A stretch of DNA of 53,412 nt from Guillardia theta CCMP2712 (lineage: Eukaryota > Protista > Cryptophyta): positions 310,252 through 363,663 of the forward strand of contig NW_005434607.1 in NCBI RefSeq assembly GCF_000315625.1, written 5' to 3'. A program made the translations under genes and the position numbers. Below are positions 1,501 through 24,493 of this stretch, piece after piece. Within the stretch, counting starts at the first letter, position 1, and each line of letters starts with the position of its first letter. The notes beneath the pieces are model-generated. The model searched no databases and was not told where the DNA came from. It saw only the letters and a list, made by a program, of their open reading frames with translations.

Positions 1501-2041
1501 TTACAGCTCGCCCTTGGGGTTGTTGTTGAGGCCCATGCTAGGAACTCTGCCCAGCTTCTTCTTCTCCTCAGTCCCACTGCTGCCTCCCTGCAGAACCGTC
1601 AGCTGCTGACATGGAGGGAGGGAGGGGTGGGGATGGCAGGGGAGAGGGGAAGGTGGAGAGGGGGGGGGGGTAAGTGAAGGGGAAAGTCAAGAAGCGAAGA
1701 AGAATGTAACTGATACGAGTTGAAAAGGAGGGGCAGGAGCAGGAGAAGGAGCAGGAGCAAGGAGCAGCAGCGGACCTCGACGGCGTTGGCAGATTCCTGC
1801 GCGTTCTCCTCGCGAGTGANNNNNNNNNNNNNNNNNNNNNNNNNNNNNNNNNNNNNNNNNNNNNNNNNNNNNNNNNNNNNNNNNNNNNNNNNNNNNNNNN
1901 NNNNNNNNNNNNNNNNNNNTGGAAGAGAGTCGAACACAGCAAGAGGAGGAGGAAGAGCAGCAGCAGCAGCAGCAGCAGCAAGAGAAGGAGCAGCAGCAGC
2001 AGCAAGAGGAGGAGGAGGAGGAGGAGGAGGAGGAGGAGGAG

Positions 2042-2093
<52 letters not shown>

Positions 2094-2659
2094 TCAATGA
2101 ATTTCACCTTGTCCTTGTCTCCTCCTGTCTGAAGGAGCTCGAGGACGTGAGGGTCCTGCTGGATTTCAGCTGGAGGGTCGGACCCAGCTCGTGCTCACCT
2201 TCTCCTTTCTCTCCTCCGCCCAGCTGAGAGGCGACTTGCCCTCCTTGTTCTGCGGGACGTCAGAGGAGGAAGAAAAGAAGCGGGAAGGGGAGAGGGGGGG
2301 AGAGAGAGGAGGGAGGAGGAGGAGGAGACGAGAAGTCAACCTGAATGTTGACGTCTGCGCCATGGCGGAGGAGGAGGATGATGACGTCATAGTGTCCCCT
2401 GCAGGCCGAAATGATGAGACGGGGCGAGGGGGAATGAAGAGGAAGAGGGAGGAAGTGGGAGCGAGGATGAACAAAAAGAGAGGGGGGGGGGAGAGGAGAG
2501 ACGGGGGACGAGGAGGCCGGCAGTAAGAGGAAGAGGAGAGAGGGAGGGAAGAAGGAGGAGGAGGTTGAGAGAGAGGAGGATCTCTGACCTGTAAAGCGCA
2601 AGGTGGAGAGGAGTGTCCTGGTCCTCATCCGCAGCGTTGACGTCCGCCTTCACCTGCGG

Positions 2660-2692
<33 letters not shown>

Positions 2693-3756
2693 GGCAGGGG
2701 CAGGGGCAGGAGATCTACCTTGTGCGTGTTGTTAAGGAGGAGGTCGACGCTTCCCCTCTGGCCGGAGGAGGAGGCGACATGGAGCGCGGTCCCTCCCTTC
2801 TTGTGCCTGAGCTCCAGGTCGGCCTTGGCCTTGATGAGCGCGTCGAGCACCTGGCGGGAAGAGCGTGAGGAGAGAGGAGAGGAGGGAGNNNNNNNNNNNN
2901 NNNNNNNNNNNNNNNNNNNNNNNNNNNNNNNNNNNNNNNNNNNNNNNNNNNNNNNNNNNNNNNNNNNNNNNNNNNNNNNNNNNNNNNNNNNNNNNNNNNN
3001 NNNNNNNNNNNNNNNNNNNNNNNNNNNNNNNNNNNNNNNNNNNNNNNNNNNNNNNNNNNNNNNNNNNNNNNNNNNNNNNNNNNNNNNNNNNNNNNNNNNN
3101 NNNNNNNNNNNNNNNNNNNNNNNNNNNNNNNNNNNNNNNNNNNNNNNNNNNNNNNNNNNNNNNNNNNNNNNNNNNNNNNNNNNNNNNNNNNNNNNNNNNN
3201 NNNNNNNNNNNNNNNNNNNNNNNNNNNNNNNNNNNNNNNNNNNNNNNNNNNNNNNNNNNNNNNNNNNNNNNNNNNNNNNNNNNNNNNNNNNNNNNNNNNN
3301 NNNNNNNNNNNNNNNNNNNNNNNNNNNNNNNNNNNNNNNNNNNNNNNNNNNNNNNNNNNNNNNNNNNNNNNNNNNNNNNNNNNNNNNNNNNNNNNNNNNN
3401 NNNNNNNNNNNNNNGGAGGAGGAGGAAGAGGAGGAAGAGGAGGAAGAGGCGAGGCGAGCAAGCAAGGAGCAAGGAGGATGTCGAGGACAAGGGCAGAGCC
3501 GTAAGAGGAGAGAAAACGAAAGAGAAAGGAAGGGGGCAGGAAAAGGGATGGGAGAGGAGAGGAGAGGAAAGAAGTACCTTCTCGTTGGTGGAGGATCCAG
3601 TAGCCGCAGCCATCATGAGAGCTGTGTGTCCCTTCTGGTTCGCCACGTTGGGGTCTGAGTAGCTTCGTCAGCTGGAGGAAGAGCGAAGAGAGACGAAGAG
3701 GAAGAGGAAGAAGTGCAGCAGGCTGAAGAGCAGGAGCAGGAGCAGAAGCAGGAGCG

Positions 3757-3805
<49 letters not shown>

Positions 3806-6800
3806 AGGCAGGAGCAGAGGCAGGAGCAGGAGCAGGAGCAAGAGCAGGAGAAAGACTGACCAGCCTTCCAGCGAAGGAGCTGATCAACAGACTTGTAGTT
3901 GGCGATGGCGGCGGCCTCGTGGAGAGCAGTGCCGCTTGCCTTGTTGATGTGGTTGGGATCGGCCTTGTTCTTGAGCAGCGTCTGACACGAGCAGTGAGTG
4001 GAGAAGGGCAGGGAGGAGGAGGAGGAGGAGGAGGAGGAGAAGTAACAGGAAAGATGAGGCAGAAAGAAACATCTGCAGAGGAGACCAAGTGGAGGAGAAA
4101 GAGGAGGAGAACGATGATGAGGAAGGGGAGGAAGAGAGGAGGAGAAGAGGAGAAGAGGAGAGGACGAGAGGACGAGAGGAGGAGGGCAGCGGCAGCGGCA
4201 GCAGCAAAGAGTGAAATCGTTTGCTCTTACAGTCACGACATCACTGTGTCCTCCAGCAGCAGCGACCATGAGGGCATCGAAGCCATTCTCATCCTGTGAT
4301 GAGGTGAGACACAAGATGAGGGAGGAGGAGGAGGAGGAGGAGGAGGAGGAGGAGGAGGAGCAAATGTAAATGAGTACAAGACGAAGGCGGGAGGAGGGGA
4401 GGAAGAGGAAGGGGAGGAAGAGGAAGGGGAGGAAGAGGAGACTTGATCTTACCTGCACATTGGGGTCGACCTTCTTCTTGAGGATATCGCCTACGACATC
4501 ATTCCATCCTTCTCCTGCGGCCTGTCCAGTCCCACCATCAGGACACGGCAAGAGGGACAAGGAGGAGGATGGAGGGGGAAGAGAAAGGACGAGGAGGATG
4601 AAGGGGAAGGAGGAGGAGGAGGAGGAGAGGAACCTCAATGAGAGCATTTCCTCCTTTCTTGTGCAGGACGGTGACGTCAGCTCCTGCCTTGATCAGCTGC
4701 TTTGCTACATCCTGAAGCAGACGTGAGAAATGTTGGTGAGCATAAGAATGCATAAAACACAGGAGGAGGGAGGAGACAGGAAGAGGAGGATGACAGGAGG
4801 ATGTGCCAGTAGCAAAATCGGCAGAATGGCAGGAAAAGGAAGAGGGAAAAGAAGATGAAAGGGGGGAAAGGATGAAGAAGGCTGAGCAAGATAAAGGAGG
4901 GGGAAGAACAAGAGGCAGGAGGAGAGGAGAGAAGAGAAGAGGAGAGGAGAGGAGAGGAGAGGAGAGGAGAGAAGAGGAGAGGAGAGGAGAGGAGGAGAGG
5001 AGAGGAGAGGAGAGGAGTACCTTCTTGGAGGAAGCACAAGCAACGATTAGAGGAGTCTCTCCATTGTCACCGATGGCATTGATGTCCGCCTTTAGCTTCA
5101 GAAGCTGATCCACCGCCTGCAGTCCTCTGTTAACTTCCCCCTGCCCCCGCCCTCGCCCTCGCTCTTCCTCTCACACCACTCCTCTTGCTCTTCCTTCTCC
5201 TCCCACCCCTCCTTTGCCGCCCTTCCTCCTCTTGCTCCTCCTCTTCCCGCTCCTCCTCCTCACCTTGGCATGCCCGCTGGAGGCAGCCACCATGAGGGGG
5301 GTCCATCCGTCCTTCCCCTTGGTCTCCAGGTCGAGCCCCTTGTCCACCAGCGTCTTGATGAGATCTGCTGCTCTTTCACAACCTTTCTTGCGCAACGGCA
5401 ACAAGAGGAGCCAGGGAGGACGAGGAGGATGGAAGGGAAGGAGCAGGAGCAGACCAGGAGCAAGGGAAGGGGTGAAGGCAAGAGCAGGAGCAGGAGCAGG
5501 AGCAGGAGCAGCAAGAAGATTTGACCTTCCCATCCTTCTCCAGCGAACTCAGTAAGGAGATTACCACCATCCTGAAGTCGAAGTGAGGGATTGAGTCAAC
5601 AGAAACCATCATCACCATCATCACCACTACCATCACCTCCTCCTCCTTTCTTCCCCTCTTCCCAACTTTCAGATGTCTTCCATCTCCTTATGCCACTACT
5701 ACACATGATCATCATCATCACCACCACCACCACCACCACCACCACCACCACCACCACCACCATCATCATCACCATCATCACCATCACCATCATAACCATC
5801 ATAACCATCATCATAATCATCCCCCAGCCGTCCCTGCTCATAGTTGCTTTCCTTGCTCCTGCTCTCACCTTGTGTGTAACATCGATATCTGCTCCTTTCT
5901 CAAGGAGGAAGTCGACGACTTTCCTCTGTCCAGATGCGGCAGCGTGCAAGAGAGGGGTAGCACCGTCGTCTCCTGATGTCACGCAGTGAGTCAAGGAGGA
6001 GGAGACAGCAGGAAGGCAGCGATCGAAGCGTGGGGGAGGAAGGGAGTAGAGCAGGAGGAAAGATGGCAGAGAAGATACAGCAGAAAGGAGTGCAAGAGAG
6101 GGTAGGGAGGAGATAAGGAAAGGGATGGTGACGAGAACAGACACAAACGGGGAGGAGGTGGGAGGGGAGGGCGGAAGAGGAGGAGGAGGAGGAGGAGGAG
6201 GAGGTGGGAGGGGAGGGCGGAAGAGGAGGAGGAGGAGGAGGAGGAGGAGGAGGGAGAGGAGGAGGAGGGAGAGGAGGAGGAGGAGGGAGAGGAGGACGAC
6301 GAGGAGAATTGAATCTTCTCACTCACCCTTGGATTCCATGTCTGCTCCTTGATCGAGGAGAAGCTACCAGAACTCTCATCTCCTCTTCTCCTCTCCTTCC
6401 CCGCAATCAACCTGCACTAGCTCCACAGAGCCGCTCGTTGCCGCAAGGATGAGGGCAGTGTACCTGGAGATCACAAGACAGACAAGTCATACCCCGCACA
6501 CAGCCCTCCTACTCCCACTTCTCCCCCCTGTTCCTCCGTTCAAGTACATACACCTGCCTGTGTCATCCATCTTCCACAACCCTGCCCTCTCCCTCCCTCC
6601 CCCTCTTCCTTTCAACTTCCCTCTGGATCCTTTCTCCCTCCCCACCCCTTTCCTTCCTCCTCCCTCTCTTCCTTACCCTCTGTCCGACTTTGCTTCAATG
6701 TCTGCTCCCTTCGTGATCAGCGCAGTCACCATGTCCTACTCCTCATTAAGCACATCCTTCCAGCACATGTTCAGCACAGCACCTGCTGTCCGCCGTAGGC

Positions 6801-9299: not shown

Positions 9300-12200
9300 A
9301 TGGCCAGGAGAGACGTCGGGACGACACTTAGGAGGAAGGACGGGCAGAGTGGAGACAAGACAACACATGGAAAGACAGAGAGGGAGGGAGAGAGGAAGGA
9401 GGAGGGAGGGAGGGAGGGAGAGGGAGGGAGGGAGAGTAACAGCAGCAGGCAGCAGCAGGATGACGCAAGTATCCCAACGCTACTAAAGTCTCCTTCCTAC
9501 TCCTGAATTTCCGACCGTCTTCATGCCTCCTCCACCTTGCAGAGATCACTCGCGCTGCTTCCCTTTCCTCTCACCCAAAGTCACACCAGAGGGAGGCGAC
9601 GATGCACCCAGATTCGAGGAGCTCAACAGCAGGATTCAGCAGCTGGAAGGGCAGGTGAAGGCCTTGTCAGCGAGGAACACAGAGCTCGAAGAGGCGAACG
9701 CAAGGCTGACAAACATCAGGGAGGAACGTGGCGAAACTGAGGACGAGCACGAGGACAGGAGGAGCGATTCCTGGCAGCTCCCTGAAGAGGCTCTGTCGAT
9801 ATTGGAGGAGCTCTATGAGAGACGCGACGACGTGGATGGGACCGATGTGCTCACGCGCCGGCTGCTGGTTGCCCTCAGCGTCGGTAGCGCCATAGAGGAA
9901 AAGGTAGCGGTGGTGGGCGGGGAGACGATGGAAACATATAGGATGAGAGTGGCGAGGGAGTGGGAGCTAGCGCACAAGAGCCTCGGCCTCGCTGAGCTGG
10001 ACCTGCTACGAGCGATGGCTGAGTGCGTTCCCGGAGGAGATGTGAACAATCCTCTCGCTGAGCTGCAAGGAGGAGCTGGAAGCCAGTCAGTAGAAGAGTG
10101 CATGAAGGCGATAAGCAGGAAGGTGAGGCAAGTCGTCTCGAAGCTCCGACCCCCGGCGACGGGGCAGGCGCAAGAGGATCAGCAGCTGCATAACAGCAAG
10201 TTCTCGCTGAACGAGGAGGCAAGCCAGGAGAGCGAGCAGGGGCTGCGCGAAGCTTCTTACGGGAGGATCGCAGAATTCTACGGGGGACTGACGGAGCGCA
10301 TCGGCCTGCCCCAGCCGAACCTGTACAAGGGCATGGAGGACGAGCACTGTAGATCAGGAGACTCTGAGGAGGCGTTCACCACAGGAAACTACTACATCCA
10401 GACAACTTCCAAGGAGGAGTGGTTGGCGGTTACCGATGCGAGGAGGCGGTCTGAGCTCTCGGACGGTCACAGGATCATCCGAGATGTGGAGGAGCTGATG
10501 CGTGATGAACTCGCTGTCAAAGCACAGCTGATCAAGGAGGAAGTCCTCGCCCTCCTGCTCTATACAGGTGTGGAAGAAGGAACACTGGAGGAAGAGAAGG
10601 AGGAGGGGGATGAAGGTGAAGTAGAGGAGAAGTATGAGGAAGACGAAGACGATGAGAAAGAGGAAGAGGAAGAGAAGGTACTCATACTCCTTTCGGCAGG
10701 TCCCATGTACCACAAGTACAACATGGCTCTGAGAGCGCCTGCTACGGTCATCAACAGGTACACGACGACCATCCACTGCATGGTGAGCGGGCTAGTCAAA
10801 CTATCCCGACACACTCCGCTGCTCGGAAACCGGAAGGTCCTCCGAGGGATGAGCGGGCTGAGGATGCCCGAGAGGTTCTTGAAGGAGGATGAGCTGGGAG
10901 TGTCGGGGGGAGTGGAGTACGGGCTGCTGAGCACAACGACTGACATCAAGACGGCCATCCAGTACGTGGGTCAAGGACTTCAGCCCATAGTCTTCGAGAT
11001 CAGCTGCGGGGCCATCGACCGGGGAGCGAGCCTGGAGTTCCTGTCTCAGTATCCCGGGGAGAAGGAGATACTGTTTCCCCCACTGTCCTACCTCGAAGTC
11101 GTCAGACAGCCCCAGAGCAAGGTGGTGGAGGGCCGGCGGGTAAGGCTGGTGAAGCTGAAGATAAATGCCAACGTTACGACGTCCACGATAGAGGACTTTG
11201 TAGGGAAGAGGAAGCAGCTGTACGTGGCTCTGATGGAGAACTTGGCCCGAGAGGTGGCGCGGGACCTTGACGATTGGGAGCCGGAGGTTCAGAGGCGGCT
11301 GAGACACGCACAGGGGGATGCGGCCTTTGGATACCACAAGGTCCTACTGAGTTCCATCATGGATGAGTGCGAGGGCCAGGTGCAGGGGAGCAGGAAGAAG
11401 ACAGACCGGTGGTACAACGACGAGAGCAACTACAAGGAAGCGATGGAGGAAGCGATGGTGATGATGGAGATGGCAACGAACAAGCTGAGGTACTGGATCG
11501 AGGATGTGGAGGGCGACTGGCAGTGTCGCAGCCTTGCAAAGCAGACAATGAAGGATATCTACTGGAAGAAAATGGCAGACTTGAGAAAGAAGATAGGTAG
11601 GACCCAGGGCCAGGATGATCAGGGGAGGCACGAGATGCTGAAGAGACTCTGCCGCATGCTGGGCATGTCAATAGAGCAGGGGGAGGCGGGGAAAGACCCT
11701 CCGACCGTCTTGGCTGTCCTGAGAGGGCAGGCAGACCTGATTTCCCTGCTGCACGCTGCTGGATGCGACTTGAACGCGCAAACCAAGGACGGGAGGACGG
11801 CGCTGCACGTGGCTTGCATGCTGGGGATGAAGGGCTGCATGCAGGAGCTGCAGGAGGCGGGGGCGGACGGGGATGCGAGGGATGAGAACGGCTGGACATG
11901 CGCGCACTGGGCGATGCAGCACGTGGACACAGCGAGGCAGCTGGTGAGGTTGCTGGGCGTGAAGGCGCTGGAGCAGAGGACTGGAGCTGGCGGGATGACC
12001 TGTGCGCACATTGCATGTGCGCGAGACAGCGTGGAGGTGCTGAGGTATCTGAAGGAGGCGTGCGGGTCGGAGCTGCTCATGGCGGAGGATGATCGAGGGC
12101 GGACGTGCGCACACATCGCAGGCTCCAGAGGCTACCTGGAGGTTCTCAAGTACCTTCATGAAGCATGCGGACCTGACCTCCTCCTCCGCATCGACCAGCA

Positions 12201-14310
12201 CGGCGCCAGCTGTGCACATGAAGCGAGCTCTGCTGGACACGTAGAGATTGTGAAGTACCTGCGGGAGGTATGCGGGAAGGAGGTGCTGCTGCTCAAGGCT
12301 CCCAACGGCTCCACCTGCGCGCTGCTCGCCTCTCTCAGAGGCCACCTGGAGCTGGTCCAGCTCATCGAGAACACGTGCGGGATGGACGCGCTGCGGCAGA
12401 AAGACGAGGAAGGCAAGACCTGCGCGCACATGGCGAGCATGGGAGGGCATGTCGAGGTCCTGAGGTACTTGGAAGGCACGTGCGGGCAGGAGCTGTCCCT
12501 CAGTAGGGTCGGCAACGGTCTCACTTGCGCCATGCTAGCAAGCTCGGGAGGTCGGGTGGAAGTTCTTAGGTATCTCAAGGATACGCACGGTGTTGAGGTG
12601 TTGCGGGAGCGAGACGAGGAAGGGAAAACTTGCTGCCATCATGCAAACGGGCACGTGAAGTCGCTGGAGTTTCTCGAGCAGGAGTGTGGGAGGGAGTTGC
12701 TGTTGGAGCGAGATGACTCGGGCAAGACTTGCGCGCATGAAGCTTGCCTGGGAGGACACGTAGAGACTCTCCGATACATCGAGGAGACGTGCGGGAAGGA
12801 GCTGCTGGGGCTGAGGGACCATCAGGGCTGGACGTGCGCACATCTCGCGAGCACTGGGGGGCACGTGGAGGTTTTGAAGCATCTTGTGGGGGCGTGCGGC
12901 AAGGAGACGCTGCTGCTGGGCGACAGCAGGGGAAAAACTAGCGCACACTTCGCAAGCTATCGAGGGCACGTTGAGGTGATGAGGTACCTGCAGGAGGTGG
13001 GGGGGCTTCAGCTGGAGCAGCAGCGCGACAAAGACGGGAAGACATGCGTGCATGAAGCATGCTCGCAAGGTCAGGTCGAGGTGCTCAGGTATCTGAGAGA
13101 GAGCTTTGGGAGGGAGCTGCTCCTGCTGGCAGACAAGGAAGGGAGTACCGGAGCTCATGAAGCGAGCATGGGGGGTCATCTCGACGCCTTGAGGTACCTC
13201 AGGGAGAGCTGCGGGCGAGAGCTGCTCATGGAGCAGAACCTCGTTGGCGAGACCTGCGCGCATGCCGCAACCTCGGCCGGCCACCTGACAACGATGACCT
13301 ACCTAGAGCAGGCATGCGGGCCAGAGATTTTTCAGCTCCCCGATCATCAGGGAAGGACGTGCGCACACATTGCAAGCGCGGAGGGGCATGTGGAGATAGT
13401 CAGGCTGCTGCGGGAGGCTGGTGGGCAGGAGCTGCTAGAGCAGGTGGACAAGGAGGGCAAGTCAGCTGGACATTACGCCAGCATGCAGGGGCATCTTGAC
13501 GTGGTCAAGTACCTCGGAGACTCCGGCGGGAAGGAGCTGCTGATGCTGAAGGACGCCTACGGACGTACGAACGCGCACCTAGCAAGCGTTGGGGGGCATG
13601 TGGAGGTTCTGCGGTACCTCAAGGAGGCGTGCGGTCAGGCGCTCCTGCTGGAGGTGACGGAAAAGGGCAAGACGTGCGCACACTTTGCGAGCGTGGGAGG
13701 GCATGGCGACGTGATCGAGTACCTGGTGGGGACTTGCGGCAGGGAGCTGCTGCTGCTGGCTGACGACCAGGGACGATGCTGCGCTCATCTTGCGAGCATG
13801 GGGGGTCACGTCGAGGTGCTGGGATACCTCCAACAAGCCTGCGGGCAAGGGATCTTACAGCAAAAGGACGTGCAAGGCAGGACGTGCGCGCACCTGGCGA
13901 GCATGGAAGGGCACGCAGGGGTCCTGAGGTACCTGCAGGCCACCTGCGGCATGGAGCTGCTGCTGGGCAAGGACGCACGGGGCACTACCTGTGCGCATCT
14001 TGCCAGCCATGGAGGGCACGTGGAGACGCTGAAGCAGCTGCTGGAAGCGTGCGGGAAGGAGCTGCTCTTGGTCAAGGACGTTCACGGCAGGACCTGCGCG
14101 CATTTCGCCAGCTCGGCCGGGCAGGTCGCCTCGCTCGAGTTCCTCAAGGAGGCGTGCGGGCCTGAGCTCCTGCTGGAGAAAGACAACGGAGGAGCGAGCT
14201 GTGACTACTTTGCGAGGTCGGGAGGTCATGTGGAGGTGGTCAAGCTCCTGCTGGAGAATCAGCTGCAGTCGGACATAGGCTCATACTCAGTAAATCCTTC
14301 AAGTGCCTAA
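9300..14310 (+). CDS. Coiled-coil + arginine-type (R-S-E clade) mono-ADP-ribosyltransferase domain + ~25 ankyrin repeats
   Basis: ORF 9523-14310 has the ART motifs LYTG-PMY..YN, VLRGM (R), LLSTTTD (S-T-T) and SQYPGEKEILFPP (E-x-E), then ankyrin repeats GxTCAHxASxGGHVEVLRYL. Probable first exon 9300-9468 joined by a phase-1 intron 9469-9580 (start uncertain). In-frame intron 10568-10699. Confidence 0.88.
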
Positions 14311-15445: not shown

Positions 15446-16057
15446 ATTTTCGTGTGAGGCTTTACTGCAGACATGGCAGGCGGAGGAGAAGAGGCGCGAG
15501 GGGAAGCTGAGAGGACGAGGGCGGGAAGAGGAAGAAGGGGCGGGAGGAAGAGGCAGCAGCAAGAGGAAGGAGGAGAGGGAGGAGAGGGAGGGGAAGAAGA
15601 GATTTTGGAGTCGGAAGGATACGCAAACTCTCCAAACTCCCATTAGAGATACTGCGCTCACAAATCCGTTCAACGTGTAGTAGTCCTGTTTTCCCTTCCT
15701 GTTCCCAAATTTGTTGTGTTTCTTCTCTTTCGTCCTACAACACCTATGCTTCAATGTGTTGGATTCGATGTTCAATTTTCATCTCCCCTATGATGTACGG
15801 AAATTCCCGCCCCCCCCCGCCCCCGCCCCCCCTTTACTCTTCTCAAATTTCGTACTGGTATCAAACTGACATGAGTCATGCCAGATCAAAAATCTCACAG
15901 GAACGGAGGAAATTCTTGTGTAAACACATCTTCGTAAGGAACGAGCATCGACGCTGAGGGAAAGCGATGGAGGATAACAACATTTCGCTGATGTTGAGCG
16001 CCATGATTACGTGACCGCATGTCTCCGTTCCCCCCGCCGATTGATTCCGGGAGGACC

Positions 16058-19000
16058 ATGGTGGCGGACGCATCTCTAGACTACAAAGTTCATGAAGAAG
16101 GCGCAGAGGAGGAGGAGGAGTTGAACGCTGAAGAGGATCCTATCAAGCAGCTCGACATTCAGCTCAGAGAGCACTTTACGTTGCTGTACATGTTGGAGCC
16201 AGGAAACCACCTGAACTCAAAGCTCGGAGTGAGAGAACTCTACAGGAAGGACTTGCTCACATCATTCTTCTACAAGGAGCCGCTGACAGCGCTCTACGCG
16301 CACAAGTTCTTCCAGGCGCTGTCGTTCATATATGGTGGATACCTGGTGACCATGGCGTACATGTCCACTTTGAAGTATCACGATTACGAGCATCGGCTGG
16401 TGAAGATCGATACTGTGCTGGTCGAAACTGATTACCAGAGAAACCCAACACGGATCGACTTCAGTCTGGCGAGCTGCAGTTGGAATGAGAACCTGAGCTT
16501 CGTCTTGGCTGCAGCCCAGGGTTTGTCATACATGCTGTCGTCGGTGTTTGCGTTCTTTGAGTGCATGAAGGCTCCGAGACGGGTGAGTGAAGATGTGCTC
16601 CGCTCCCTCTCGCTCTTGTTGACATCTGACTGATCCCATAGATCATTGTCCTCGGAGGGTGGATCGTTGGAATCGGGAACCTTGTTCTTGCCGTCGGGGC
16701 CAGGGATGAGATCTCCGAGCTTGACAACTCCCAGACCTTGACGTTGTTCTTTGTGGTGAGTTTGAAGCGTTCTTGTCGATACGATGTGACCTGACTTCAT
16801 GGCAAAGACAATCTTTGTGTTCCCCTGCCCCATCCTCTTCCTGGAGACGTTCGCCCTGGAGCTGCTCGTGGTTTCTCTCGTCATCAGGATCATTGGGTAC
16901 GCGACGGTCAGGAGCTACAGGATCGAGCTGCTGGTGGCCTTCGTGCTATTCTTCGCAGCCCTCCTGCACAAGATCTCCAGGAGGATCGCTGCCTCCAAGG
17001 AGCTGAGGGTGGACGCTGCCATGTTCGACAGCGCATGGAAGTCGATCACCAGCATGGGGCAAGCTCAGTCAGCCCTCCAGGAGACTGACAGGCTCATCAA
17101 CGAATTCTTCGTCTCCTTCCCCGGCAAGTCTACGCCTACCAGCAGGCACACGTTCATCATGCCGTCGTCGTCCATGGAGGCACCGACGGTCGACGGAAGC
17201 AACAGGAGGCTCAGCCGGATGAGCTCGAGGTCGAGGGTGATGCCGATCGACTCCATGATCTCGATCTCCGTCAGCTCATTAACGGACTCCATTCCTTCTT
17301 ACCCTGTTCACAACTTGGATCAGCTGTACGCCCGGTCTGTCGTCGTGCTCCCAATGCTCTTGCGTAAGGTGATGACGGTAGGGATAGATTGGAGCGGATA
17401 CTGCTGCATAGTGAATGCGGACGGGCAAGAGAAGCAGTACCTTTTGTACAAGGACCTGGAGAAGTCCCCAGCTGCCATGAGGAATGTCTACTTCTCCAGC
17501 ATCAAGAACATCAACCGGTCGGTTGAAAAGATCCTGGCCTTCCTGTACGGCGACGTTTCTCAGCTCACAGACGTGGTGCGGCAGAGCATCTTCTTCAACA
17601 GCCTGGAGGACCTGAATGGGGCGCTGAAGCAGCTTATGGAAGACACCGAAATCGAGATCGCGTACATTAGAAACCGACTGAGCAGGCCGTGCAGCGGGTA
17701 CAGAGACATCACTTTGAACATCTGCTTCACCAACGACCAGGCCATCCAGAACAACTTGCTGGGTCACATCTGCGAAGTCAGGCTTGCTCTGATTGAGCTG
17801 CACTCGCTCGTCTCTCCAGCGAGCCATGAAGCTTGCATCATGAGGAAGCTGATCCTGCAGACGCGCAAGATGGACAAGGGGAACGCCAGCAACGTGCTGT
17901 TCCTCATCAAACAACGGCGAAAGTTCCTTCAGACTTTTACGTTCGTCATGCAGTCAGGAATGATGGTCAGCGAAGGCGCTGCAGAGGGCGACACGTCCTC
18001 TGTCAGCTCTCTCCTTATGGCAGCCAAGGGGATGGTGCCGGGGGGGCTTTTGGACCACCTCGTCCACTCGGTCGAGGCAGGAGTGCACGACGCCAAGACA
18101 GGGAGCGTGATTTTCTCCTCCCGGCCTCTCAGCAACGTCATACACAAACGCATGTTTCAGATGGGGCTGGTGGTAGCTGGTGTTGTGATGATAGTCACTT
18201 ACGTCTTGGACGACTACCTCCCGATCATGGAGCTGGTCAGTCGCAGCCACTTCGCTGTCTCGCATGCCCGCATCAAGGTGTTGAGGACAAGGTCGCCAGT
18301 TGCCCCCAACGCCTCCCTTGAGCGCTTCAGCTTCCTAAGAGACTGTGTCAAGCTGACCCCTGAGCTGAAGGCGAGGAACGAGTCGCACTTCTACTTTTCC
18401 TTCCCCAGTCCGATCTCTGCCAACGGATGGGAGTTCTATACAGGCTCGCAGGATTCTTCCTACCAGCACGACCCCACCGCTCTCGAGCTGCACGTGACCC
18501 AGGACAGTGCCCAGCTCGACCCTACGAGCTTGAGCGAGGCGAGCTGGGCACTGAAGTCAAAGTTTGACTGCGGGTTGAGCCCAAGGACCGAACTCTGTGA
18601 GCCGAAGGAGGAGAACGTGACGAGGACTCGGAACCAGCGGTATCACTTCGACCTGAGGATCTCCTGGCAGTGCGTTGCCGAGTTAGTCAATATCTCCTTC
18701 CGGATGATCGCGACCTTTGGTACACCCATCCTCGCACAAGCAGGCTTCACTCTCCTGGGCAAGATTGCCGTCGCTTGCGCCTTCCATGCTACAGGAGTCG
18801 TCGATCTCATCGTCGCCACCTTCACGCCTCTGCCTCTGCTCGGATTCCTGCAATCTTTCCTCTGGGGACTCTTCGAGTTGGCGTATGGCTCGGTGATGCA
18901 GTTCAAGGAGCAGTACACGCTTACGCTGCTTCCTGTGTACTGCCTGGCCGGATCCTTCATGAACACGCTCCTCATCAACCTTAGGGATGGAGAATTCAGC

Positions 19001-19975
19001 GTCACGATCAGTACCCTGCGGCCCAACCACATCTTCCTCTTCTTCGCCTGGGTTTCCTTCTTCGTCTGGAGGAGGTATCTGCTGTACAAGTCATTCAAGA
19101 GGATCGAGCGAGACATCTTTGAGTACGACGAGCTCTGGCGGCAGGTAGCGCAGGACGAGCGCAACCTGGCGGAGCTCAACGACACCATGAACAGGCTCCA
19201 AGTCCACTGCTCTGCGATACAGCACCTTTCCCTCCCCTCCGATGGGATGAGGATACCGCGGACGCCCATCGGCCTCGAGAGCACCTTCAGGCCCCAGCTG
19301 GCTCTCCAGATCCAGGAGAAGCTCGCTCGCAAAAGCTCGCGACTGGTAACCATGATGGCCTTGACAAAGGAGCTCACTATGACCACCTCCCAACTGAGGG
19401 TGAACTCCCTGGAGCAGCTGTACGCGCAGGCTCTCGTCGTACAGCCCGTGTTCTTCGAGAAGGTGAAGGAGCTGGGCTCTAGGTGCAACTGCTTCTTCCT
19501 CCTCGACGACTTCCTGCGGGAGAACGAGCGGTACATCGCATGGAAGGAGATCACCGACGTCCCAGACCGCATCACCATGATCAAACGCCCGGCCCTCAAG
19601 AACGTCAGCCGAGCCATCCAGAAGGTCGTCCGATCCTACAACGGCGACGTGTCGCGGCTTACGGACATCGTGCGCTACGCGCTCGTCTTCGACGACATCG
19701 TCGAGCTCAGGAGGGCCGTCGAGCTCATCATGGAGGATTCCGACATCAGAGTGGTGAGGGTGAAGAACAGGCTGGACCCTAACTACAAGTCGATCAAGTC
19801 AGGCGGGTACAGGGACATCTGTATGAACATCAGCATCTCCAACCACTACACCCAGAGGCTCTTCATCGATCATCACCTTTGCGAGCTTCAGCTGGTGCTC
19901 AGGAGCTTCATGGACCTGAGGAACGAGAAAGGGCACAAGAACTATCGCGTCTTCCGCGATCAACGTTGTGAATAG
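16058..19975 (+). CDS. Multi-pass membrane protein with two RelA/SpoT-synthetase-like nucleotidyltransferase domains (6TM-RSH-6TM-RSH), ~1268 aa
   Basis: Exons 16058-16582, 16642-16755 and 16808-19975, with GTGAGT donors and all introns phase 0. Domain 1: IKNINRSVEK..YGDVSQLTDVVRQSI..IRNRL..SGYRDITLNI..HICEVRL. Domain 2: LKNVSRAIQKV..YNGDVSRLTDIVRYAL..VKNRL..SGGYRDICMNI..HLCELQL..GHKNY. These match RelA_SpoT Syn1-Syn4 motifs. Two clusters of six hydrophobic segments. Confidence 0.82.
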
Positions 19976-20011
19976 TCGCCGCATCTGTATGTACATATTC
20001 TTTCCCCTTCT

Positions 20012-21402: not shown

Positions 21403-22689
21403 ATGTTGAGAAAATGTCTCTTGTCAGCGGGACATAGTCTGAAGGCAAGTTTTCCTTACAGCAGAATCCTTGGCAGCAGGGGAGCAAAGGGACTCCCTTC
21501 CTCCCGAGCGTACGGCTCGCTGCCGATAGGAGGCTATGAGAGTGAGTCTGTAAGGCCGAAGCTCTTCATCCCCGGACCCGTCGAGTTCTCTCCTGAAGTC
21601 CTGCAGGCAGCTGGGTCGGGGGCGAGGGCGCATACAGACACGACCCTCATCGAGGACTTTGGGAGGTCAATCGAACTGGTCAGGAAAGTCTTCCTCTCCT
21701 CCTCCGCTCAGCCCTTCATCCTCTCTGGTTCCGGTGTGCTCGGATGGGATGTGGTCGCCTGCAACCTCCTGCGGAGGGGCGACAGGGTTCTACAGGTGAA
21801 CTCAGGGTTCTTCAGCACGAGGTTCGAGGACGCGTACAAGCAGTACGGGATGGAAGTGACGTCGGTCGCTCCCAAGGTTGTTGGTGCGAGGCCGCTGCAT
21901 GAGGAGGTGGAGAAGGAGCTGAAAGGAGCGAAGCAGTCTTCCCGCCCCTACAAGATCATCTCCATTACAGGGGTCGATACGTCCACGGGCGTGCTTGCCG
22001 ATCTCAAGGCCCTCTGCGAACTGACCAGGAGCGTCTCCCCCGACACGCTCATCGTGGTGGATGCCGTCTGCTCCGCTGCTGGGGAGGAGCTGCGCATGGA
22101 CGAGTGGGGCATCGACTTCGTCCTGACGGGCTCGCAGAAGGCCATTGGGGTACCTCCCGGCCTGTGCGTCATGATCTGCTCCCAGCAAGCTCTCGAGCGC
22201 ATCCCCGACAAGGCAGCGATCCCCAACTACTTTGCGAACCTCCGCAGCTGGATGCCCATCATGGAGAGCTACGAGAAGAGGAAGCCTTCCTACTTTGCTA
22301 CCCCGGCCGTGAACCTCGTCGGGGCCCTGAGGGTCGGGCTGGAGCAGCTCCTGGAGACTCCCGGAGGGATGGACGGGTACTTTGACGCGCACAGGCGGAC
22401 CAAGGACCGGGTCCATAAAAAGCTTTCTTCAGCTGGGCTGCAGCTGCTCACGGAGAGCTCTCAGGTGTCTTCGAACCTACTCTCCTGCATCCGCTACCCC
22501 CAGGGGAAGGCGGCGGGCGACATTCTTCCCCCCATGAAGGAGCGAGGATGGATCATTGCCGCAGGGCTGCACCCGGCCTGTGCCGGGGAGTACTTCCGAG
22601 TCGGGCACATGGGATACTCAGTGACGAAGAGGCCGGAGTGGATTGACAAACTCACCGACGACCTGGTGGAGATAGCATGCTCCAAGTGA
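21403..22689 (+). CDS. AGXT: Alanine--glyoxylate/serine--pyruvate aminotransferase (class V PLP enzyme, yeast Agx1-like), intronless, with a probable mitochondrial presequence
   Basis: Motifs LFIPGPVEFS, SGSGVLGWD, VDTSTGV, VVDAVCS, TGSQKAIGVPPGL (PLP lysine), YFATPAVNL and FRVGHMG. The N-terminal ~40 aa are R/K/S/L-rich and acid-free. No PTS1 (ends CSK). Confidence 0.93.
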   Translation: MLRKCLLSAGHSLKASFPYSRILGSRGAKGLPSSRAYGSLPIGGYESESVRPKLFIPGPVEFSPEVLQAAGSGARAHTDTTLIEDFGRSIELVRKVFLSSSAQPFILSGSGVLGWDVVACNLLRRGDRVLQVNSGFFSTRFEDAYKQYGMEVTSVAPKVVGARPLHEEVEKELKGAKQSSRPYKIISITGVDTSTGVLADLKALCELTRSVSPDTLIVVDAVCSAAGEELRMDEWGIDFVLTGSQKAIGVPPGLCVMICSQQALERIPDKAAIPNYFANLRSWMPIMESYEKRKPSYFATPAVNLVGALRVGLEQLLETPGGMDGYFDAHRRTKDRVHKKLSSAGLQLLTESSQVSSNLLSCIRYPQGKAAGDILPPMKERGWIIAAGLHPACAGEYFRVGHMGYSVTKRPEWIDKLTDDLVEIACSK

Positions 22690-22956: not shown

Positions 22957-24493
22957 TCAAGTGCTGCAAGGAAGTCCAACGAGGACAAGGTTTCTCGCTG
23001 AGATGTCATCAGCAAATGACAGAATCCCGAGCTCCCACTGCCAAGTGAGTCAGAGAGGATGGCAAAAAAGAAGTCAAGCCGTTCGGACCTTGTCCTTGTC
23101 AAACTTCCCCAGCCGAGCTGAGCCGAGAGCTGGGAGAGGTGGAGTAGGGAGTCAGCAGGGCAGGAGGAGCAGGAGAAGGAAGCACCTATCATGGCCTCCT
23201 TCTGACACCTCACTGACTCCTCGTGCGGGTCTGTCAACTCCCCAAGCTTTGCGAGCTTCCTCCACCTGCACTTCCATTGAATCCTCCTCTCCCTCCCCCG
23301 TCCCCCATCTCCAATCCAACTGTCCTCCTCCTCCTCCTCCTCCTCATCATCATCATCATCATTATCATCATCATCATCATCATCCCTTCTCACCTCTCCT
23401 CCCACTCGTCGCAGCTCGTATCCCCTTTGCTCCCAGCTGCCTCCTCCCCGGGTCTACTTTCTCCTCTCTCCTCCTCTCGTAGCATGTTGCTCTCTTGTTC
23501 CGACTGCCCTGCATTGTGAGCCAGCTCTCGGAGGTGAAAGTGCTTCAGGAAGCAACACGGGCAGCACAGGAACGGAGCCTGAGAAGACGTGAGGAGGCGA
23601 AGAGGAGGATGACACGGGCGAGCTGAGCACGAGGAGGAGCAGGAAGAGAGACAACAAGAGACGTGGGAGGGAGGAACGAGGAAGGAGGGGCAAAGAGGTA
23701 TCAAAATGTACCTTTTCCCTCCTTGCCAACGAGAGGATGGCGTCCGTCAGGCCTCCACAGGCATGGAGTCCTACAAGTACCAGGCGCTCCTTCTCCCCTC
23801 CCCCCTCTACGATCCCACGTCTCGCCAGCAGCTCCGTCACGTTCTCCTCGCGGAAGCGGATCCTCTCCGCGATCTCCCTCCCCTCCGCATCCTTGACTTC
23901 CGTTGCCACCGTCCTCGCTGCTTCCAGGGATGGCAAGTTGACCTCCAGCTGCAAAGGAGTAGCAGCAAGTGAGTCAGCACGTGTCTCCCCCGCAAACTTC
24001 GCACCATCATACTCACCATCTCCACCTTCAACTTGGACATGTACTTGGCAATGTTCACTGTCAGATCCCCGCGCCCTCCTCCAACGTCCACGACTGTCCA
24101 GCCGTTCCCGTCCTCCCAGGCGATGTTCCCGTCTTGGTGTGCCGGCACCTCCCCGGCGAACCAAGAGCTCTTTGCTCTGCCACCGAACAGCTCGTTCAAC
24201 CTCTGCAGCATCCAACGCACCTGTGGTGCCTTCTTGCCATGCGCATACGCGTCTCGCCGCTTCTGCTCGCTCTCCTCGCTCTGGGAAGGGATGGTGATCA
24301 CGACGTCGAAGTCCCCGGTAGTCTCAATTCGCTTCATATGAAATTTCGCTTGAGTCTTACTCGCCTGCTCCAGCGCATCCAGGAGCTCCTTGTCAATCTT
24401 GCACGGGCGAAGCCTGCAAGCAAGTCACGCTGATATCGCTACCACGACCTCCTCCTCCTGCTCCTGCTCCTGCTCCTGCTGCTCCTGCTCCTG

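Follow-up and report, generated by a model that had tools for sequence, protein, structure and literature searches.

Stress signalling in bacteria and plastids centres on enzymes of the RelA/SpoT homologue (RSH) superfamily. In eukaryotes, the superfamily includes the long RSHs of plants and algae (RSH1-3, CRSH), which have an HD hydrolase domain and also further regulatory domains and plastid targeting. To our knowledge, no dedicated (p)ppGpp or (p)ppApp synthetase has been established in the eukaryotic cytoplasm. Here we analyse a gene in the nuclear DNA of the cryptophyte Guillardia theta CCMP2712, at positions 16058–19975 on the + strand of a 53,412-nucleotide stretch of contig NW_005434607.1 (C67, positions 310252–363663; hereafter the window). 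It encodes a membrane protein with two RSH synthetase-fold domains, C1 and C2.

The closest described enzymes are bacterial. Small alarmone synthetases (SAS) such as RelQ/SAS1 and RelP/YwaC/SAS2 (PDB 5ded, 6fgk, 6ewz) are soluble single-domain proteins that form tetramers via their C-terminal helices; Tas1 (PDB 6ox6), the (p)ppApp synthetase of Pseudomonas aeruginosa type VI secretion, is secreted as a toxin, which an immunity protein neutralises. Hydrolases are known, MESH1 among them, and animals have been reported to contain traces of ppGpp (reviewed in PMC10107265). Atkinson et al. (2011) described scattered, divergent synthetase-only proteins ('divRel' SAS) in fungi, Dictyostelium and diatoms (PMC3153485); their survey does not mention a membrane or tandem-synthetase architecture. 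Our literature searches returned no description of membrane-anchored or tandem eukaryotic RSH proteins and no study of the present family. An earlier, sequence-only reading of the window had spoken of a possibly undescribed signalling system: 'undescribed' has to be qualified here, since UniRef has automatically named one paralog 'RelA/SpoT domain-containing protein', so that the domain can be recognised in some members.

A duplicated module with an RSH synthetase fold

The protein is a tandem duplicate of one module: six predicted transmembrane (TM) helices, a juxtamembrane helix, a linker and a domain with the RSH synthetase fold. Its parts map to the window as follows.

17300–17890, + strand: C1, the first RSH-synthetase-like domain (protein ~378–574; from sequence comparison)
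18149–18208, + strand: TM1' of module 2 (protein 661–680; from AlphaFold secondary structure and hydropathy)
18251–18652, + strand: beta-sandwich between TM1' and TM2' (protein ~695–828; predicted to be extracytoplasmic)
18665–19093, + strand: TM2'–TM6' (protein 833–975; from AlphaFold; homologous to TM2–TM6 of module 1)
19388–19972, + strand: C2, the second RSH-synthetase-like domain (protein 1074–1268; contains all family-invariant residues and ends in R-x-x-R-C-E)

Profiles of the domain family, built from 8 domains and then from 75, were compared with 177,635 PDB sequences. They matched RSH synthetases only: the E value of YwaC/RelP went from 0.0047 with the 8-domain profile to 1.7e-4 with the 75-domain profile, and that of Tas1 from 0.11 to 4.7e-4. 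With C2 residues numbered from window position 19388, as throughout, D93, G-Y-R, E166-x-Q and H183 are in register with D-I-A-G-V-R, G-Y-R-S, E-I-Q and H-K-x-Y of YwaC. The AlphaFold model of C2 has a predicted local distance difference test (pLDDT) score of 93.2, and its best 50 Foldseek matches are all RSH synthetases; the fold could be told apart from other Pol-beta-type nucleotidyltransferases. The Pfam RelA_SpoT model recognises 12 of the 75 family domains at E ≤ 0.01, the best of them at 8.6e-5. By its homology with C2, C1 shares the fold. Altogether, profile matches, Pfam on family members and AlphaFold/Foldseek show that both domains have the RSH synthetase fold, and the RelA/SpoT motifs that the sequence-only reading had assigned to each half are borne out.

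Pfam recognised no family in the whole protein or in exon 1, including no HD domain and no guanylate or adenylate cyclase domain. NCBIfam returned chance-level matches only for the protein, PADLOC one weak and uninformative match (candidate family PDC-S33, E 0.005), and a sequence search with the domain profile gave 13 short unnamed proteins.

The half that contains C1 matches the half that contains C2 by BLASTP at E=3e-31, with 27% identity over 331 aa that take in the last TM helix, the 'DxxxFDxxW' helix and the 'LDQLYA/LEQLYA' segment. Compared pairwise by themselves, the TM parts match weakly (BLAST, E=0.16). A profile of 18 regions of the first transmembrane domain (TMD1) was then aligned by hhalign with one of 39 regions of the second (TMD2): the probability is 99.8% (E=3.2e-29) over 247 columns, which span the end of the outside domain, TM2–TM6 and the 'ED...FD.AW' juxtamembrane helix. 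Together, the two matches show that the whole module was duplicated, as had been proposed from the letters alone. The beta-sandwich, predicted to face outward, occurs in module 2 only; the TM1–TM2 loop of module 1 has 44 residues.

The gene is expressed as a spliced transcript. Two in-frame open reading frames (ORFs) of 204 codons (16019–16633) and 1058 codons (16799–19975) share the same reading frame, and inspection of the sequence shows GTGAGT donors at 16583 and 16756 and AG acceptors at 16641 and 16807. Contigs from three runs of three studies (X1, X2 and X4), which we presume to be RNA, carry both GT..AG exon joints; an intron-less contig is what cDNA gives. One contig of 4011 nt is the spliced form of 15900–20002. 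The spliced product is 1268 aa long, exactly as in the sequence-only reading.

16058–16582, + strand: exon 1, with the acidic, predicted cytosolic N-terminus (~80 aa), TM1, a 44-aa outside loop and TM2 (from ORF/translation, spliced contigs and hydropathy)
16583–16641, + strand: intron 1, 59 nt, GTGAGT...ATAG; joint 16582/16642 in contigs of runs X1, X2 and X4
16642–16755, + strand: exon 2, 38 codons, with TM3 and the next outside loop; aligns with P0001 residues ~170–207
16756–16807, + strand: intron 2, 52 nt, GTGAGT...AAAG; joint 16755/16808 in contigs of runs X1, X2 and X4
16808–19975, + strand: exon 3, 1055 codons and stop, with TM4–6, linker, C1, inter-module segment, TMD2 with the ectodomain, linker and C2

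Two homologous proteins span both exon junctions in alignment. The best paralog, P0001 (GUITHDRAFT_104621), is a G. theta hypothetical protein of 1257 aa with 60% identity, its gene lying on contig C17 of the assembly; P0002 is a 1253-aa protein from the Hanusia phi transcriptome. An in-frame ATG at 16019, 13 codons 5' of the start at 16058, is an alternative start inside the transcribed region (16019–16057) that would add 13 residues.

Active-site residues of the two domains

The family-invariant set in C2 comprises K71-x3-R75-x3-K79-x2-R82, D93-x2-R96, G140-Y141-R142-D143, H163, E166-x-Q168 and H183-x2-Y186. Across 75 domains K71, R96 and E166 are invariant, while R75, K79, D93, G140, Y141, R142, H163, H183 and Y186 are conserved in at least 90%. 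The basic motif for donor ATP, K71-x3-R75-x3-K79-x2-R82, is present in C2, in C1 and across 20 paralogs; D93 and E166, conserved in 41 of 41 paralog domains, align with the D and the E-I-Q of YwaC. G140-Y141-R142 is also conserved, aligned with G-Y-R of YwaC, and the His found further along the canonical G-Y-x-S-x-H motif is absent. The spacing K71/R75/K79/R82...D93...Y141...E166 equals that of K66/S70/K74/R77, D90, Y128 and E145 in FaRel2, where these residues hold the ATP triphosphate, an Mg2+ ion and the acceptor base (PMC11782079). As read from these alignments, the donor-ATP and metal-binding residues are conserved in both C1 and C2.

In C2, the loop that precedes G-Y-R-D has many K and R residues. 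It fits the positive acceptor patch ascribed to alarmone synthetases rather than to the tRNA-modifying toxic SAS (toxSAS) enzymes (PMC11782079). N127, D143 and H163 are conserved residues specific to the family, which has in common with Tas1 the lack of the first Arg of the R-x-K motif and a D-x-x-R block.

In this gene, C1 keeps the equivalents of K71, R75, K79, D93, R96, N127, G-Y-R-D, H163, E166 and H183; it has R in place of Q168 (E-x-R), C in place of Y186 and a five-residue deletion before G-Y-R-D. We took a census of the gene with 20 G. theta paralogs (21 C1 and 20 C2 domains). The basic motif, D93, G-Y-R-D and E166 are kept almost without exception in C1 and C2. Position 168 is Q in 19 of 20 C2 and R in 17 of 21 C1, and position 183 is H in every C2 (20/20) and in 11 of 21 C1. 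For this gene we rejected the idea that C1 is simply degenerate, because it retains both metal ligands, the basic motif and G-Y-R-D. C1 is thus modified rather than plainly dead; given its E-x-R and its faster evolution (below), we regard it as most likely an altered or regulatory copy, with C2 as the main catalyst.

A maximum-likelihood tree of 42 domains does not separate C1 from C2. The C1 and C2 of one gene are well-supported sisters in five genes, and in three more subfamilies the C1 domains form a clade whose sister group is the C2 domains of those genes. Of the two branches, that of C1 is in all cases the longer (stems of 1.87 for C1 and 0.87 for C2 in this gene's subfamily), which means that C1 evolved faster in every subfamily examined. 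This would follow if the tandem arrangement has more than one origin, or if gene conversion within genes keeps the copies alike and leaves a few C1-specific residues in place. The asymmetry is thus an evolutionary puzzle: same-gene copies cluster, yet most C1 domains carry a common C1-specific substitution. A complex prediction for C1 with C2 gave a score of 0.00, which counts neither for nor against their pairing.

Membrane part and gene family

Hydropathy gives about 6 + 6 hydrophobic segments, in agreement with the count per half made from the sequence. We modelled protein residues 616–1082 with AlphaFold from an alignment of 39 sequences (mean pLDDT 78.9, ~90 in the core). The model of module 2 has six TM helices; a beta domain of about ten strands separates TM1' from TM2', and TM6' extends into a long juxtamembrane helix. 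The TM1'–TM2' loop (protein 681–832), which holds the beta domain, contains three N-x-S/T sequons and three Cys.

Basic stretches are found on the same side as the soluble domains, namely KAPRR, a loop with the single K913, RRIAASK and WRRYLLYKSFKRIER. The N-terminus of the 1268-aa protein is acidic and has no hydrophobic signal sequence or plastid presequence; with the lack of an HD domain in Pfam, this accords with what the sequence-only reading had stated. Given the even number of helices per module, the basic juxtamembrane segments, the sequons and Cys, and the acidic, signal-less N-terminus, we place the N-terminus, C1 and C2 in the cytoplasm and the beta domain outside it. Searches found no convincing structural relative of the beta domain: its sandwich gave generic matches only, which speak neither for nor against a discoidin domain.

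The G. theta genome (87.1 Mb, 669 contigs) contains about 105 matches to the domain, most of them paired ~2.1 kb apart within frames of 1000–1100 codons. As the pairs lie inside single large frames, they represent roughly 50 tandem genes; there are also about 10 single-module frames of ~650–750 codons. Many paralog frames begin just 5' of a conserved 'FPxP' segment in TM4, consistent with an intron at the position of intron 2. Nearly all paralogs (loci L013–L032) have R-(D/N)-x-R-C-E right before the stop, here at window 19955–19972; this ending may be a sorting or interaction signal. Identity to distant paralogs is 43–46% for C2, 31–35% for C1, 19–26% for the ectodomain, 23–29% for the TM part and 18% for the linkers. 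Because the membrane and ectodomain part diverges far more than the catalytic domains, we propose a receptor family with a common output. Genome-wide, searches for HD_4 and for RelA_SpoT (PF04607) each find the same two genes only, ordinary long RSHs with both domains on contigs C47 and C24.

A profile search of 1.84 billion representatives returned 3792 clusters at E ≤ 1e-3 and 1062 at E ≤ 1e-10, which include two-domain (1000–1700 aa) and one-domain (500–900 aa) membrane proteins. All named members are cryptophytes (Guillardia, Hanusia, Rhodomonas, Teleaulax); the others are unnamed metagenome or transcriptome sequences. Look-alike clusters of the ESM-Atlas carry eukaryotic labels, including a few records from ciliates and diatoms. 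The Pfam RelA_SpoT model misses a clade with thousands of environmental members, the 3792 cluster representatives, and standard annotation leaves most of the family as 'hypothetical protein'.

Some relatives differ in layout. L036 (contig C48:466000–470500, frame 1723–3771, − strand) is a single-module relative of 683 codons that encodes an outside domain rich in beta structure, TM helices and a single domain of the RSH-like kind; this domain has C1-like features, namely E-V-R and G-R-R-D in place of G-Y-R-D. On an ENA metagenome scaffold, L037 (gene 3006–6716) encodes P0015, a 1236-aa uninterrupted two-domain homologue on a 17.5-kb contig, adjoining a DUF8234 protein; 15 near-identical copies across samples point to a protist that is abundant in the environment. 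L033–L035 (C4:1071678–1071887, C16:429721–429921 and C71:208811–208960) make up another G. theta family, more distantly related. These have frames of 800–1000 codons, several TM segments and an RSH-like block K-x3-R-A-x2-K...D-L-V-R; either this block corresponds to the first half of the domain alone, or a long insert splits the domain. Further along, L035 has G-Y-R-D and E-V-Q as well; its 'FFLSYR' start was considered as a TIR domain and dropped, as Pfam gave no match.

Around the gene, a 1595-codon frame lies upstream (window 9523–14307, + strand), in which ankyrin repeats (Ank_2, E 1e-95) form at least 11 stretches. A separate note had called this ORF 'ART-ankyrin', a label that one Pfam scan did not confirm, as no ADP-ribosyltransferase family was matched at E ≤ 1e-3. 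Downstream are a class-V aminotransferase match (window 21403–22686, + strand; E 1e-17) and a weak, below-cut-off Methyltransf_32 match (window 23454–24212, − strand; E 1e-5). We did not adopt the idea of a 'defence island': we found no functional link between the ankyrin-repeat or aminotransferase neighbours and the RSH-like gene.

Proposed function and comparison with known systems

From the conserved residues, we consider it somewhat probable that at least C2 is an active pyrophosphokinase that makes a cytoplasmic 3'-pyrophosphorylated purine nucleotide, controlled by the membrane and ectodomain part and with C1 as a modified partner. C2, and possibly C1, would bind ATP-Mg2+ through K71/R75/K79/R82 and D93/E166. 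A purine nucleotide would stack on Y141 and receive the beta,gamma-pyrophosphate at its 3'-OH; the product, formed on the cytoplasmic side of the membrane, would be a nucleotide of the (p)ppGpp or (p)ppApp type, and this output would be controlled through the membrane and ectodomain part. As to the acceptor, the Tas1-like block and the missing guanine-side His would slightly favour adenine nucleotides; the best global matches of the domain are (p)ppGpp synthetases.

A broader proposal is more tentative. Cryptophytes, and possibly other protists, may have receptor-type alarmone synthetases, about 50 of them in the one genome of G. theta, in which variable ectodomains and TM parts sense a ligand or stimulus and the cytoplasmic domains make (p)ppGpp, (p)ppApp or a new relative, C1 being an allosteric or pseudo-enzyme partner of C2. 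If this were true, eukaryotes would have a membrane-initiated second-messenger system built on the fold of a bacterial stringent-response enzyme. A large, expressed membrane family with the alarmone-synthetase fold and its catalytic residues is a candidate for the eukaryotic cytoplasmic synthetase and for a new class of receptor-enzyme.

Several points weigh against the pyrophosphokinase and receptor proposals. The RelA_SpoT model (PF04607) gives C2 15.6 bits (E 0.02), compared with a gathering score of 27, and does not match C1 alone. Two residues of canonical motifs are missing from the family: the first Arg of R-x-K, and the G-Y-R-S-L-H His, which in (p)ppGpp synthetases contacts the phosphates of the guanine nucleotide; judged by these absences, the acceptor site differs from that of a canonical (p)ppGpp synthetase. 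The topology, which would put C1 and C2 on the cytoplasmic side, rests on hydropathy, one AlphaFold model and the positive-inside rule, and the short 'outside' loop RSYR conflicts with this topology. Structure comparison found no convincing relative of the TM bundle, so that 'receptor' is an analogy. Finally, no dedicated cytosolic alarmone hydrolase that would complete a signalling cycle was found in the genome, where HD_4 is confined to the two long RSHs.

Other readings of the same domains were weighed. They might pyrophosphorylate a macromolecule, such as the 3'-CCA of tRNA that is the target of CapRel, FaRel2 and PhRel2, in a membrane-sensor system of immunity or cell arrest in which detection by the ectodomain leads to translation shutdown. 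The spacing shared with FaRel2 is compatible with such an activity, and the K/R-rich loop of C2 fits the other class of enzyme; Pfam detected no toxSAS antitoxin or immunity domain and no pseudo-Zn-finger domain in the protein. We hold this reading to be unlikely. Still less probable to us is that the RSH-like domains bind nucleotides so as to regulate or energise a transporter or channel and make no messenger. Such a protein would resemble the full-size ATP-binding cassette (ABC) transporters, which have the same layout of a transmembrane and a soluble domain, twice. Yet thousands of relatives hardly vary in the two Mg2+ carboxylates or in the Tyr that stacks on the acceptor, which argues for two-substrate catalysis rather than binding, and we know of no RSH-fold domain that energises transport. 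The domains could also be active enzymes of the nucleotidyltransferase fold with another chemistry, nucleotidylating a protein or small molecule or making a different messenger. This accommodates the departures at the acceptor site, sits beside PDB and Foldseek matches that are all RSH synthetases, and is in our view the least probable of these readings.

The pyrophosphokinase reading can now be set against the known systems. Contrary to the soluble SAS of bacteria, the domain occurs here in a eukaryote and is tethered twice, to two 6-TM modules. Where SAS have D-x-x-G-x-R it has D-x-x-R; it is also without the Arg and His named above and falls below the Pfam cut-off. With Tas1, the sequence match extends over ~40 residues only, and no immunity partner is evident at this gene.

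The sequence-only reading had compared the protein with adenylyl cyclases, and in layout the comparison stands. Animal class III adenylyl cyclases likewise alternate two 6-TM bundles with two cytoplasmic domains that convert nucleotides, a helix coming between each bundle and its domain, and their two soluble domains are also homologous yet asymmetric; the single-module relatives (~680-aa frames, one domain) parallel the bacterial 6TM-cyclase homodimers. The analogy is not unique, since ABC transporters share the layout, and it does not extend to the enzyme: the catalytic fold is unrelated, Pfam finds no class III cyclase domain, and each RSH domain has a full active-site set rather than half of a shared site. 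Like the long RSHs of plants and algae, the protein is a eukaryotic member of the RSH superfamily; unlike them it has no HD domain and no signal peptide, and it combines twelve TM helices with two synthetase domains. It is thus neither a long RSH, nor a usual SAS, nor a demonstrated toxSAS, nor an adenylyl cyclase. Although its catalytic domain is below the Pfam threshold, the fold and the pattern of active-site residues assign this domain to the RSH synthetase superfamily, as a divergent member.

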